From Podarcis muralis (Eukaryota): a stretch of DNA of 64,000 nucleotides. Both the position numbers and the translations under genes were made by a program. Position 1 is the stretch's first letter, and each line of letters opens with the position of its first letter. Shown piece after piece: positions 1,861-16,809 of this stretch. The notes below the pieces were generated by a model. That model had not been told where the DNA came from. It saw only the letters and a program-made list of their open reading frames with translations, and did not search any database. The stretch covers positions 16,802,001 to 16,866,000 of the forward strand of contig NC_135670.1 in NCBI RefSeq assembly GCF_964188315.1. Direction: 5' to 3'.

Positions 1861-4800
1861 TTAGTCTTCCAAGTTGCGGAAGGCATTCTGCATTTCCTCG
1901 CTAAGCTGGGCGTAGTAAGCTTTGATATTTGCCTCTCCGTCCTTCCCTGGATCCTGGATAAAGAGACAAACCATGATTTATGAATGGCAGGCTGAAAACA
2001 CATTGAAAGAAAAGAGAAGAGAAGAGAAGAGAAGAGAAGAGAAGAGAAGAGAAGAGAAGAGAAAAGAAAAGAGAGCTACTAGGACCAGCAGCAGACTTTG
2101 GGCTCTCAAATTTCTTTTTCTTTTTTTAAAGAAATTATTTTTATTTTATTTTACAAATACTAAGTTGTAAATATCCAAATATATATCCATATACAGAGAT
2201 TACCCCAACTCTTGTGACTTCTCCCCACCCACTCCATGGGCTCCCGTTTTAAACATTTACAACTGCATATTCTTCTATTCTCTAAATATTATATAAATCC
2301 ATATTGTCCATGGTACAAATGGAATCAAAATCCTGTCAAAGTTTCCATCTGCTTACAGTGGTCTCCTAAATAACTTATAATTTCCCCCCGTTCTTTTACA
2401 AAGTTTTTGTCCTCTCGGTTCCTGAGTCTTCCAGTCAGCTCTGCCATTTCGGCACAGTCCAACAGCTTGGTTTGCCATTACTCTCTGGTAGGGACTTTTT
2501 CTCCATTCCATCTCTGGGTGGGCTCTCAAATTTCAACAGTGTCCTATGTCCTATGTGACACTAAAATCTCTCTCTCTCCCCCCCCCCCCCACCTCTCACA
2601 CCCCGTTCTACAGCACTGTTTTGGTGCCCCCTGCAGCACAGCACCCAGTATGACCGCACTGGTTGCACCACCCTAAAACCGCCTCTGCTAGGATGGAGGC
2701 AGGTAGAAATAAAAGGGAAGCTGCAATCAGCTAGTTAAACTGAAGGTAGACGGCCGAGCCTCACCTTGAACTTCATGGAGCTCAGCTTGTACATGATCTC
2801 CCCAAGGTTCTCGCGGATGACAGCCCAGGTGATTTTGTGCTCAGACTGAGCAGTGGACTCTACTGCATGGCGGGCCAACTCATAGAAGCCAATCATGTTC
2901 TGGAGCATTCCTACTGTCTTGTAGAAAGGGCAGAACCTGGAATCGAGAAGCACGTTCAGTGGTGAGCGAATAAATCTGAGCGCAAGTGCTGTGGAATGTC
3001 TTGAATTCTTTTTTACTGGGGTGCTGTTTGTGGGAGGCACCCTCCTTAGTTATTTGTTTCATAAAATTTGTACATCGCATGACTGTAAAAAACAACAACT
3101 CTCAAAGTGGTTTGCAAAAAAGATAGAAGGACAAAGTTATCAATATGAAAAATTGGCAATAATTTAAGACTTTTGAAAAATTAAAACAATAGACTAAAAC
3201 TCACATCAACTTCAACTTTCTGGGTAGGCTTGTCTAAACAAAAATATCTGAAAGGCTGTCACATGGAAGATGAACCAAGCTTGTTTTCTCCTGCTCTGCT
3301 CTGGAGATCCAAAACAATGGATTCAAATGATGAGAAAGGAAATTACGACTAAACATTAGGAAGAACTTCCTGATGGTAAGAGCTGTTTGACAGTGGAACA
3401 GACTCCCTTGGAAAGTGATGCTCTCCTTCCCTGGAGGTTTTCAAATGGAGGTTGAACGGCCATCTTTCGGGGATTCTTTAGCTGTGATTCCTGCATTGCA
3501 AGATGCTGGACTAGATGACCCTGGTAAATCCCTTCCAGCTCTACAGTTCTATGATCTGGAGGGCCACAGGCTCCTCATCCCTGCTGAACACTTGAAGTGT
3601 TGTGTTGGGAACTCCACTTTAATTCTGTTTTCAGCTAATTACAGAAAAGCAACACCTTGGCAGAGCTAAACGAGGAGAGTAGAAATTGGGCAAAAGTGCT
3701 GTGTGAAAGAGAGAGGTCCAAATATCAAGTCGACTGGTGTGGGGTTACCTGTCATAGGAAGAGTAGCCGTTTTGCTGCAGGAAGTCATCCTTGATCAGTT
3801 TGGCCACCTCCAGGGTGATCTTGTCCGTTTCAGCAAGAGACGCCTGGACAAAAGCAATAGTTATAAATGGGGAGCAGCAGCAGGAAAAGAGCGAGGTTGG
3901 GGAAAGAGAAGAATCAGGACCTAGGCACCTTCAATAGCCCTGCCTGCCATCTTTCTCAAACAAAACACTTGGTGCTTAAAAGAAGAGGTGCTGAGGTTCA
4001 AACCTGCCTGGAAATTACACCTTTTCTTCCAGGCATTCTTTGCATAATCCCAGCTTCCCCACCCAGCTTCATTTCTCCCCAACAGGGAAGTGCGGCAATG
4101 CAAGGCACACTGTGCACAGTCAGTGATCTAGGCTTAAGCCCTGCTGCGATTGGAAACAGATTCCAGGGCTTTGTAGCCATTTTGGGGTGTTTTGGCCACT
4201 TCACATATTTTATATCAGGAATACTTACAACAACCTGTAAGGTGTCTATCTTAGCAGTCTGGGTGTCTTGAGTATGGCCAATTGCAGAGTTCCAATGCCC
4301 CAGGATTTGAGTTAACAATAGATTTTGAAATACCGCTTGCACTCGCATCACTGTGACTTTACAAAATGTACTGCAAAATCAGGTTCCTCTAATCCTTTCA
4401 AGGCACAGAACTACAGTGCCAGGGTTACAGGCAATGCAAGGCCCCTGGTCTCAACAAACTGGAATGGTGAAAAAATTGTGATGGCACAAATACCATTCCA
4501 CCAAAGCGCTAATGAGGCAAATGAAGATTTTTAAAGGAACAGAAACAAATTGATGAGTAATGATTTTTCTCTCCTCCCTCTGCAGACACCCTTCTGTTCT
4601 CCTCCTCACCTTTCCAACCAGCTGGACAATCTCTGCCAGATCTTCCTCCTCTTGCAGGATCTCCTTGGCCTTAGTGCGCAGGGAGACAAACTCCGGGTAG
4701 TGCCTCTCATAGTGTTCATCTAACGCCCGCATGTATTTGCTGTAACTGATCAGCCAGTTCACTGATGGGAAGTGCTTTCGCTGAGCTAGTTTCTTGTCCA

Positions 4801-7800
4801 GCCCCCAGAAGACCTGGCGTTATTAGGACCAGAAGGGAGGTGAGGAGTTAGCAGGACCATGCCAGGTAGCGTCAAGGAGCTGGCAACACTCTAGGAGGGA
4901 GACTCACCTGGACGATCCCCAGCGTTGCTGAGGTGACTGGGTCAGAGAAGTCACCGCCAGGAGGGGAGACCCTAGGAGTCAATGGGAAAGGTGAGATGAA
5001 ACTCCCAGTAAGAGCTAAGTTGAGGATCTGATCCCCTGGAAGCTGGGAAGCTGTGGCCAAGCACACGCCAGGTATGAAACCAACAGATACCTACTTACTA
5101 AAAATGCAGGCCTCTTGCAAGTCTGAAAAAGGAGACGTGTGTAAAATTTGGCCTGAGTCCACAGAGAGGTCTTTTTAAAACAAGAAAGCAGGACTGGACA
5201 CTGAACCTGGGACCTTAGGAACACCGAGCACCTGGTCTAATATTGACCCTGGGGCTGATGGGAGTTGTGGTCCAATATGGCCATGCTAGCTGAGAGCTGA
5301 TGGGAGGTGGAGTGCAAAATGGCTGTGCTGGCTGGGGCTGATGGGTGTTGGAGTCCAAAAGGGCCATGTTGGCTGAGGGCTAGTGGGAGATGTAGTTTCA
5401 AACTTCTGAAGGGCACTAGGGTGGAGAAAGCCATCAAAATGAATGGATTTGACGATTGGGGCTGATGGACACTTTAGCCCAAAATATCAGAGGCCACCAG
5501 GCTGACACGGGGCTGTGCTAAACTCACAAAATAAAATTTAGTGCAAACACCGAAGAACGTTGATATTAATTTTAATATACCACCATCCACACACCTAGAG
5601 CTTTACAAAGACCAGAAATTACGTGACGCAAAATTCAATGCAAGGAAGGAAGATGGCTTATCTCTTTTCCTTATTTTGGATTTTAGATAATGGGTGCTAT
5701 CTTTAAAAAACAACCACCCAGAGTTCTCTTACTCAATAGAAACTTGTCTGTCACCGACATTAAGCACCTTTAGAGAGGTGTTGAAATAAGTAAATGATAT
5801 CAATTAATTGCTTGAAAGGCAGTCGGTTTATCCGCTCAGAGATCTTTAACCGGGTTTAGGAGTCCCCTGCTTCACTTCTCTCCAACCACACCCTTGGTAA
5901 GGCACTGAGGTGGTGAAACTTACGCTCCGACAATGCTGACGCTCCCTTCCCGCTCTGGACTCCCCAAGCACTTCACACGCCCGGCCCGTTCATAGAAGGA
6001 AGCCAGGCGGGCACCCAAGTAGGCTGGGTACCCGCTGTCTGGAATTTAAGAATGTAAAGTTAAGAAGAGTCCTACAAGGTCAGCAGCCCATCACCAGTTC
6101 TCACAGTGCCTCCAATGGGATGCCTATGAGCAGGAGCTGAGCACAACAGCACTCTTCTGCTCTTCATAGAATCATAGAGTTGGAATAGACCACAAGGGCC
6201 ATCGAGTCCAACCCCCTGCCAAGCAGGAAACACCATCAGAGCACTCCTGACATATGGTTGTCAAGCCTCTGCTTAAAGACCTCCAAAGAAGGAGACTCCA
6301 CCACACTCCTTGGCAGCAAATTCCACTGTCGAACAGCTCTTACTGTCAGGAAGTTCTTCCTAATGTTTAGGTGGAATCTTCTTACTTGTAGTTTGGATCC
6401 ATTGCTCCGTGTCCGCTTCTCTGGAGCAGCAGAAAACAACCTTTCTCCCTCCTCTATGTGGCATCCTTTTATATATTTGAACATGGCTATCGTATCACCC
6501 CTTAACCTCCTCTTCTCCAGGCTAAACATGCCCAGCTCCCTTAGCCATTCCTCATAAGGCATCGTTTCCAGGCCTTTGACCATTTTGGTTGCCCTCCTCT
6601 GGACACGTTCCAGTTTGTCAGTGTCCTTCTTGAACTGTGGTGCCCAGAACTGGACACAGTACTCCAGGTGAGGTCTGACCAGAGCAGAATACAGTGGCAC
6701 TATTACTTCCCTTGATCTAGATGCTATACTCCTATTGATGCAGCCCAGAATTGCATTGGCTTTTTTAGCTGCCACGTCACACTGTTGGCTCATGTCAAGT
6801 TTGTGGTCAACCAAGACTCCTAGATCCTTTTCACATGTACTGCTCTCAAGCCAGGTGTCACCCATCTTGTATTTGTGCCTCTCATTTTTTTTTGCCCAAG
6901 TGCAATACTTTACATTTCTCCCTGTTAAAGTTCATCTTGTTTGTTTTGGCCCAGTTCTCTAATCTGTCAAGGTCGTTTTGAAGTGTGATCCTGTCCTCTG
7001 GGGTGTTAGCCACCCCTCCCAGTTTGGTGTCATCTGCAAATTTGATCAGGATGCCCTTGAGTCCTGTTCCACAGCAGCCTGGATTCAGATAGCACAGAGC
7101 CAGGATCACCAGTAACCATGGTTATCCTCTGGGGATTTTGCCTAATTCCCTTTCAAAGCTGTCCAAAGTGGTGGCCATCTCATTTTGTATTTTTATGTTG
7201 TGAACCACCCTGTGATCTCCAGATGACAGACAGTATACTACTACTACTACTACTACTAATAATAATAATAATAATAATAATAATGGTGTGCAGGTTTACA
7301 ATCTAAGAAAAAAATGGCGCACAAAGGATAAGGGACAGGGAGGTGCTGAAAAGCTTACATTGAAGGTGATTGATGATGTCAGGGTGCAAAGGAGGGGGAT
7401 CAAGATGATCAAGGGCCTGGAAACCAAACCTTATGGGCAATGGTTGAAGGAGTTGGGGTGTTTAACCTGGGAGGTGATAGGCTAAAAGGTAAAGGTAAAG
7501 GTACCCCTGGCAGTTAGGTCCAGTCACGAATGATTCTGGGGTTGTGGCACTCATCTCGCTTTACTGGCCGAAGGAGCCAGCGTACAGCTTTGGGGTCATG
7601 TGGCCAGCATGACTAAGCCGCTTCTGGCAAACCAGAGCAGCGCACGGAAATGGCGTTTACCTTCCCACTGGAGCAGTACCTATTTATCTACTTGCACTTT
7701 GACATGCTTTCGAGCTGCTAGGTTGGCAGGAGCTGGGACCGAACAACGGGAGCTCACCCCGTTGCAGGGATTTGAACCGCCAACCTTTTGATCGGCAAGC

Positions 7801-16554: not shown

Positions 16555-16809
16555 GATTCTGGAAGGTGAGATGAGGCCGCAGGGTAGGACTTTCAACTGC
16601 AACAATACCTGCATCAGAAATGGGGTGGGAGGATGAATCAAAGCGGGGGGGGGGGACCCATGCCCTGGGTCTTTTGCACTGAGTTTTAGATTTCCTGCTG
16701 CTTTCAGAAACTTTTGTATATAAAATATGCTCACACAGGGCAGTTTAGCACAATGCTGGTAAGACCACAGTCACCCAACATCTTAATTTGCCCAGACAGA
16801 AAGCACATA

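Follow-up and report, generated by a model that had tools for sequence, protein, structure and literature searches.

ATP6V1A-like, a probable second V-ATPase catalytic A-subunit gene of the lizard Podarcis muralis

The stretch of the Podarcis muralis genome analysed here (contig NC_135670.1, positions 16,802,001 to 16,866,000; hereafter the window, 64,000 nucleotides in all) carries on its minus strand an intact gene encoding a catalytic A subunit of the vacuolar H+-ATPase (V-ATPase; V1 sector), listed in databases as A-like and referred to below as ATP6V1A-like or A-like. It is almost certainly a second A-subunit gene and not the sole ATP6V1A of the species, the canonical locus having been seen in the congener P. 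lilfordi, and purifying selection on it is as strong as on the canonical gene. We place at roughly 90% the probability of the fuller reading, according to which ATP6V1A-like is a second V1 catalytic A gene that arose by genomic duplication before sharks and bony vertebrates separated and that likely serves a distinct pool of pumps.

The exon model was obtained by tblastn of squamate proteins against the window, with refinement of the splice junctions on the minus strand. It comprises 14 coding exons, from the ATG at 16554 to the end of the stop codon at 1861, with GT...AG at all introns, and yields a coding sequence of 1854 nt specifying 617 amino acids without internal stops or frameshifts. 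Coding exon 1 (16473-16554) begins with the ATG and has a probable start at 16558, with 4 nt of 5′ untranslated region (UTR). Exon 3 (13516-13730) covers the end of the β-barrel and the start of the extension region, exon 6 (9824-9986) holds the Walker motif and exon 8 (8736-8858), which is highly conserved, the Walker B region. Matches and junctions likewise place exons 2 (15184-15312), 4 (11182-11319), 5 (10202-10353), 7 (9507-9615), 9 (5924-6038), 10 (4908-4971), 11 (4610-4813), 12 (3749-3843) and 13 (2765-2936), all on the minus strand, and exon 14 (1861-1953) closes with the stop codon at 1863-1861. The sole AATAAA found 3′ of the stop, at 1598-1603 on the same strand, is likely the poly(A) signal and implies a 3′UTR of about 260-280 nt. 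At the other end an AG acceptor ends at 16559, so that exon base 16558 sits 4 nt before the ATG; because of this acceptor there is probably a non-coding 5′ exon upstream. An initial annotation of the stretch had set the upper bound of the gene at 16558, which fits the first base after the acceptor, and its description of an intact open reading frame (ORF) of 14 coding exons and 617 residues with catalytic motifs is borne out by the spliced model. A processed pseudogene or retrocopy was ruled out by the 13 introns at ancestral positions together with the intact ORF. From frog to lizard the two paralogues agree in the length and phase of each of the 14 exons, so the duplication was genomic and not a retroposition.

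The predicted product retains the Walker A motif GAFGCGKT at residues 250-257, GERGNE at 278 and the Walker B region at 349, all of them intact and the same as in canonical A subunits across vertebrates. Cys254, Cys277 and Cys532, which we take to be the redox-regulatory cysteines, are also present; a putative protein kinase A site at Ser175 was dropped, as every sequence has Thr there. Exon 3 alone matches the V1-A chains of solved mammalian V-ATPases (E about 1e-33), and the precomputed Pfam hits for the cluster of this protein and for all its close relatives are ATP-synt_ab_N, ATP-synt_ab_Xtn, ATP-synt_ab and ATP-synt_VA_C. Alignment with the mammalian cluster representative (P0235) gives 75 differences (87.8% identity), where the initial annotation had estimated 70-75 by eye (about 88%). 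From a squamate canonical protein the product differs at 86 positions, only 5 of which lie in the 240 positions of residues 221-460, with the remainder concentrated in the N-terminal tail (residues 1-20), the extension region (100-220) and the C-terminal domain (460-617). Clade-diagnostic positions number only 7, and all are conservative changes. At the nucleotide level the paralogue-specific exons are 1, 3, 4, 13 and 14, with 68-82% identity to the canonical gene.

The gene is already annotated: both RefSeq and UniProt list it as A-like, as had been guessed beforehand. The spliced protein is identical to the RefSeq entry 'subunit A-like isoform X2 [Podarcis muralis]' (P0355), and isoform X1 (P0363; 659 amino acids) differs from it solely by a 5′ extension. 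Orthologues in birds, turtles, Alligator sinensis, geckos, snakes, monitors, amphibians, sturgeon, coelacanth and sharks carry the same name, and that of Xenopus laevis is entered as 'V1 subunit A like' (P0404; atp6v1al). Full-text literature searches found no functional study of a tetrapod A-like gene.

A closer-to-human ATP6V1A, of the kind that the initial annotation had proposed to look for near NAA50 in the same assembly, was found within the genus. In Podarcis lilfordi the A-like gene (P0360) and a canonical ATP6V1A (P0440) lie on different chromosome-sized records, the canonical copy being flanked by a 170-residue acetyltransferase (NAA50-like) and a CTC1-like gene; at the canonical loci of Notechis and Python the CTC1-like gene is the only neighbour within 10 kb. 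Both genes occur in Varanus, Python, Notechis, Gopherus, Gallus, Anas and Acipenser, and also in the genus Pelobates, where they are spread over two species. We note separately that the chicken canonical entry in UniRef (P0229) has an unrelated stretch in place of its Walker A segment; a similar, alternatively spliced isoform of chicken A was reportedly described in the 1990s literature.

A maximum-likelihood (ML) tree of 61 sequences, computed under the site-heterogeneous model LG+C20+F+G4, divides the jawed-vertebrate A subunits into two clades, whose supports are given as ultrafast bootstrap/SH-aLRT (Shimodaira-Hasegawa-like approximate likelihood ratio test). The A-like clade (27 rows, 91/92) unites Mustelus, Latimeria and the Acipenser A-like protein with six amphibians and all sauropsid A-like proteins, and the window gene is nested among its squamate members as sister to Rhineura. 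The other clade, that of canonical ATP6V1A (27 rows, 98/91), contains the mammal representative and the canonical copies of sauropsids and frogs, together with sturgeon, Polypterus and all sampled teleosts, including those named 'Aa'. Lamprey and hagfish are placed outside both, without resolution. The window gene neither groups with mammalian ATP6V1A, the placement that, with no other ATP6V1A locus in the genome, the initial annotation had said would make it a translocated orthologue, nor lies beside NAA50 as a canonical orthologue would; the ancient paralogue that had been suspected, one not found in mammals, corresponds to this gnathostome-wide clade. No mammal or teleost row falls inside the A-like clade of the 61-sequence tree, and bird and turtle A-like queries returned no mammal or teleost above canonical similarity among the matches listed (the best 120 of 8000 word-filtered candidates scored). 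These comparisons suggest that the gene is likely absent from mammals and teleosts. As a side observation, the 90%-identity cluster of cyprinid 'Aa' A subunits also lists GRAMD1C/Aster-C and ZDHHC23 entries. Odd as this clustering is, we take both genes to be neighbours of the canonical human ATP6V1A, and the cluster hints at a position of teleost Aa within the canonical block.

Within squamates the two genes are equally constrained, since the ratio of nonsynonymous to synonymous substitution rates (dN/dS) between Podarcis and Python is 0.027 for A-like (dN 0.0215, dS 0.79) and 0.025 for the canonical gene; the dN/dS check that had been suggested for the locus accordingly returned strong constraint. 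Change along the A-like lineage since the duplication is about twice that along the canonical lineage, rising to four to five times in birds and sturgeon, and bird A-like copies evolve about twice as fast as those of squamates. The base composition at third codon positions (GC3) also differs, at 0.72 for A-like versus 0.55 for canonical in Podarcis and 0.70 versus 0.42 in Python, and it reaches 0.81 in chicken A-like. A GC-richer setting of the A-like gene was observed in Podarcis, chicken and Python.

The A-like gene is transcribed in relatives of P. muralis. The full protein is encoded by intronless 2.2-kb contigs from public run assemblies of chicken (L002) and of two further reptile samples, whose proteins cluster with the skink Tiliqua (P0213) and with geckos and colubrid snakes (P0438), respectively. 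A bullfrog protein (P0403; GenBank BAF02793.1) is found on 18 short Logan contigs, about 2 kb in length. Among the sequencing runs listed as containing the stretch none is on record as RNA, and those marked 'RNA?' contain more words than the exons account for and are uninformative on expression. Between the ATG exon and the neighbouring Kelch gene (16500-21000) there is no 500-bp bin resembling a CpG island, whereas the canonical P. lilfordi locus (L006, 6000-12000) has such bins both at the end occupied by the NAA50-like gene and close to the 5′ end of the canonical gene itself; the missing upstream bin is a weak hint of tissue-restricted transcription.

The neighbours of the gene were identified by Pfam scans of the ORFs in the window, and their domains agree with the KLHDC9/PFDN2/NIT1/DEDD block in which the initial annotation had placed it. 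A Kelch-repeat (KLHDC9-like) gene, with a large exon at 20903-21445 on the plus strand, stands head-to-head with A-like and is followed by PFDN2 (27258-32831, minus; Prefoldin_2 exons), NIT1 (36100-41900, plus; CN_hydrolase exons) and DEDD (47323-53098, minus; DED and TRADD-like_N exons). This arrangement recurs in relatives: the chicken order is DEDD-NIT1-PFDN2-A-like, and Python and two other Podarcis assemblies (one of them Podarcis raffonei) show Kelch-A-like-claudin-like, with PFDN2 beyond the Kelch gene at one of the Podarcis loci. The claudin-like gene, common to lizards, also adjoins A-like in Xenopus. In sturgeon A-like adjoins CFAP126, presumably a member of the human 1q23.3 block near KLHDC9/PFDN2/NIT1/DEDD. 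As to the Kelch gene, fish are represented by one locus. In the shark Mustelus asterias (L004, 1-27094) a Kelch model sharing that gene's Pfam signature overlaps A-like on the opposite strand; tblastn of the lizard KLHDC9 exon against this shark locus gave no match, and the adjacency is no more than suggestive. That locus is very repeat-rich, its A-like entry is flagged LOW QUALITY and the Kelch model may be unreliable. We also assume that human 1q23 and 3q13 share the paralogue pairs NECTIN4/NECTIN3, B4GALT3/B4GALT4 and ARHGAP30/ARHGAP31, which would fit an origin by whole-genome duplication.

Other features of the window are repeats and one further reading frame. ORFs resembling fragments of the reverse transcriptase of long interspersed nuclear elements (LINEs) occur at 6236-6865 (minus) in intron 8, at 12024-12401 (minus) in intron 3 and at 23372-24202 (plus) near the Kelch gene, and much of the 2.7-kb intron 8 is a LINE-like insert. 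Microsatellites lie in the introns and 3′ flank at 13040-13100, 14380-14440, 15590-15700 and about 2000-2100; they comprise tracts of (CA)n and of (TA)n with (CA)n, a run of trinucleotides and, just 3′ of exon 13, a repeat rich in purines. Beyond DEDD, a GC-rich ORF at 62017-62478 (plus), rich in Arg, Ser and His and without a Pfam match, probably represents exon 1 of the gene that follows.

Several points weigh against a second catalytic A gene of pre-shark origin with a pump pool of its own. The canonical gene was observed in P. lilfordi and not in P. muralis itself, and the transcripts come from relatives outside Podarcis. Support for the A-like clade is good and not maximal, its fish members sit on long branches, shark synteny is not confirmed, and the tree does not place the cyclostomes firmly, so that an origin in the first or second round of vertebrate genome duplication (1R/2R) is not established. 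Absence from mammals and teleosts depends on word-filtered searches in which 8000 candidates were scored and 120 listed, and assembly into V1, like any specialised role, was reached by inference. A younger, tetrapod- or sauropsid-specific duplicate, into whose clade the fish 'A-like' proteins would have been drawn by long branches, is highly improbable. The sturgeon, shark and bird branches are indeed long, the clade support is below maximal and the shark neighbourhood lacks confirmation, but the tree was built under a site-heterogeneous model (LG+C20), and constraining all tetrapod sequences to a single clade lowers the log-likelihood by 31 units (approximately unbiased test, p=0.017), which rejects a tetrapod-only duplication. 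The CFAP126 neighbour in sturgeon and the claudin-like neighbour common to amphibians and lizards also argue against a younger duplicate.

A silent, decaying or non-catalytic copy without a role in the pump has still less in its favour. Podarcis RNA evidence and an upstream CpG-island-like bin are both lacking, as such a copy would lead one to expect, but a dN/dS of 0.027 across the lizard-snake divergence, equal to that of the canonical gene, is difficult to reconcile with decay, as are 617-residue ORFs that are intact from frog to bird, the conservation of every catalytic and regulatory residue checked, and spliced full-length transcripts in chicken and two other reptile samples. Least credible, to the point of being negligible, is the idea that the window gene is the sole ATP6V1A, a translocated and faster-evolving orthologue of the mammalian gene. 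Its identity to mammalian ATP6V1A is within the range of a fast orthologue and the canonical locus of P. muralis lacks direct observation; however, a canonical gene distinct from A-like lies beside an NAA50-like one in P. lilfordi, several squamates carry both genes, and the tree sets the window gene in the A-like clade, apart from mammalian ATP6V1A.

Returning to ATP6V1A-like as an ancient second catalytic gene, we envisage that a genomic duplication copied ATP6V1A together with its introns before the divergence of sharks and bony vertebrates, and that the A-like copy would have stayed in the block corresponding to KLHDC9/PFDN2/NIT1/DEDD and been kept in cartilaginous fish, coelacanth, sturgeon, amphibians and sauropsids. 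From its near-identical core (residues 221-460) and low dN/dS, we infer that its product alternates with B subunits in the A3B3 hexamer and hydrolyses ATP like canonical A. The divergent outer surfaces could provide for different partners, targeting or regulation. Because the N-terminal tail, the extension region (about 100-220) and the C-terminal helical domain differ, the most likely outcome would be a distinct pump pool, set apart by tissue, membrane or regulation. More tentatively, and with the odds against it, A-like might be the catalytic subunit of specialised pumps, such as the plasma-membrane pumps of acid-secreting epithelia or osteoclasts. If so, mammals would cover this role with their single ATP6V1A, and A-like could account for the distinct isoforms of subunit A to which a 1992 report on an osteoclast proton pump refers. 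The osteoclasts of that report are said to have been those of chicken. We draw here on the title of the report, as given in PMC2216940, which names distinct subunit A isoforms of the osteoclast proton pump.

Most sampled jawed-vertebrate lineages besides mammals and teleosts keep this second A gene, under constraint as tight as that on the first. To our knowledge, V-ATPase reviews, which are based on mammals and yeast, treat the catalytic A subunit as one without an isoform gene. The assumption of a single A subunit in chicken, Xenopus, reptile and shark work may therefore mix two proteins, affecting antibodies, knock-downs and marker genes.

Among the closest known systems is canonical vertebrate ATP6V1A, solved in the human, rat, bovine and porcine V-ATPase (e.g. 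7u8o, 6wm2), with which A-like shares its length of 617 residues, the lengths and phases of its 14 exons, the four Pfam domains, Walker A and B, GERGNE, Cys254/277/532, Ser384 and the near-identical residues 221-460. It differs from the canonical gene in forming a separate gnathostome clade, in lying beside KLHDC9/PFDN2 and not NAA50, in 75-86 substitutions, in its higher GC3 (0.72 vs 0.55) and in having no CpG-island-like bin upstream. The A-like genes of chicken, turtles, squamates and Xenopus (atp6v1al) are orthologues of the window gene, with the same clade and neighbours, and identity to the window protein is 94-97% in other squamates, 92% in turtle and tuatara and 84% in chicken. Zebrafish atp6v1al (NM_201135), which we take to be now named atp6v1aa, resembles the window gene as a second A-subunit gene with an 'A-like' name, and illustrates that A duplicates can be used in particular cell types. 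It serves as a marker of H+-ATPase-rich ionocytes (PMC3157436). Neither this gene nor teleost Aa was accepted as an orthologue, since every sampled teleost sequence, cyprinid 'Aa' among them, groups with the canonical genes and the shared name is coincidental. Mammals have tissue-specific V-ATPase isoform pairs for other subunits (B1/B2, C1/C2, E1/E2, G1-3, a1-4 and d1/d2). Like A and A-like, these are ancient paralogues that combine a conserved core with divergent peripheral surfaces, the basis of isoform-specific targeting; A-like differs from them in that it concerns the catalytic A subunit, which is without an isoform gene in mammals.

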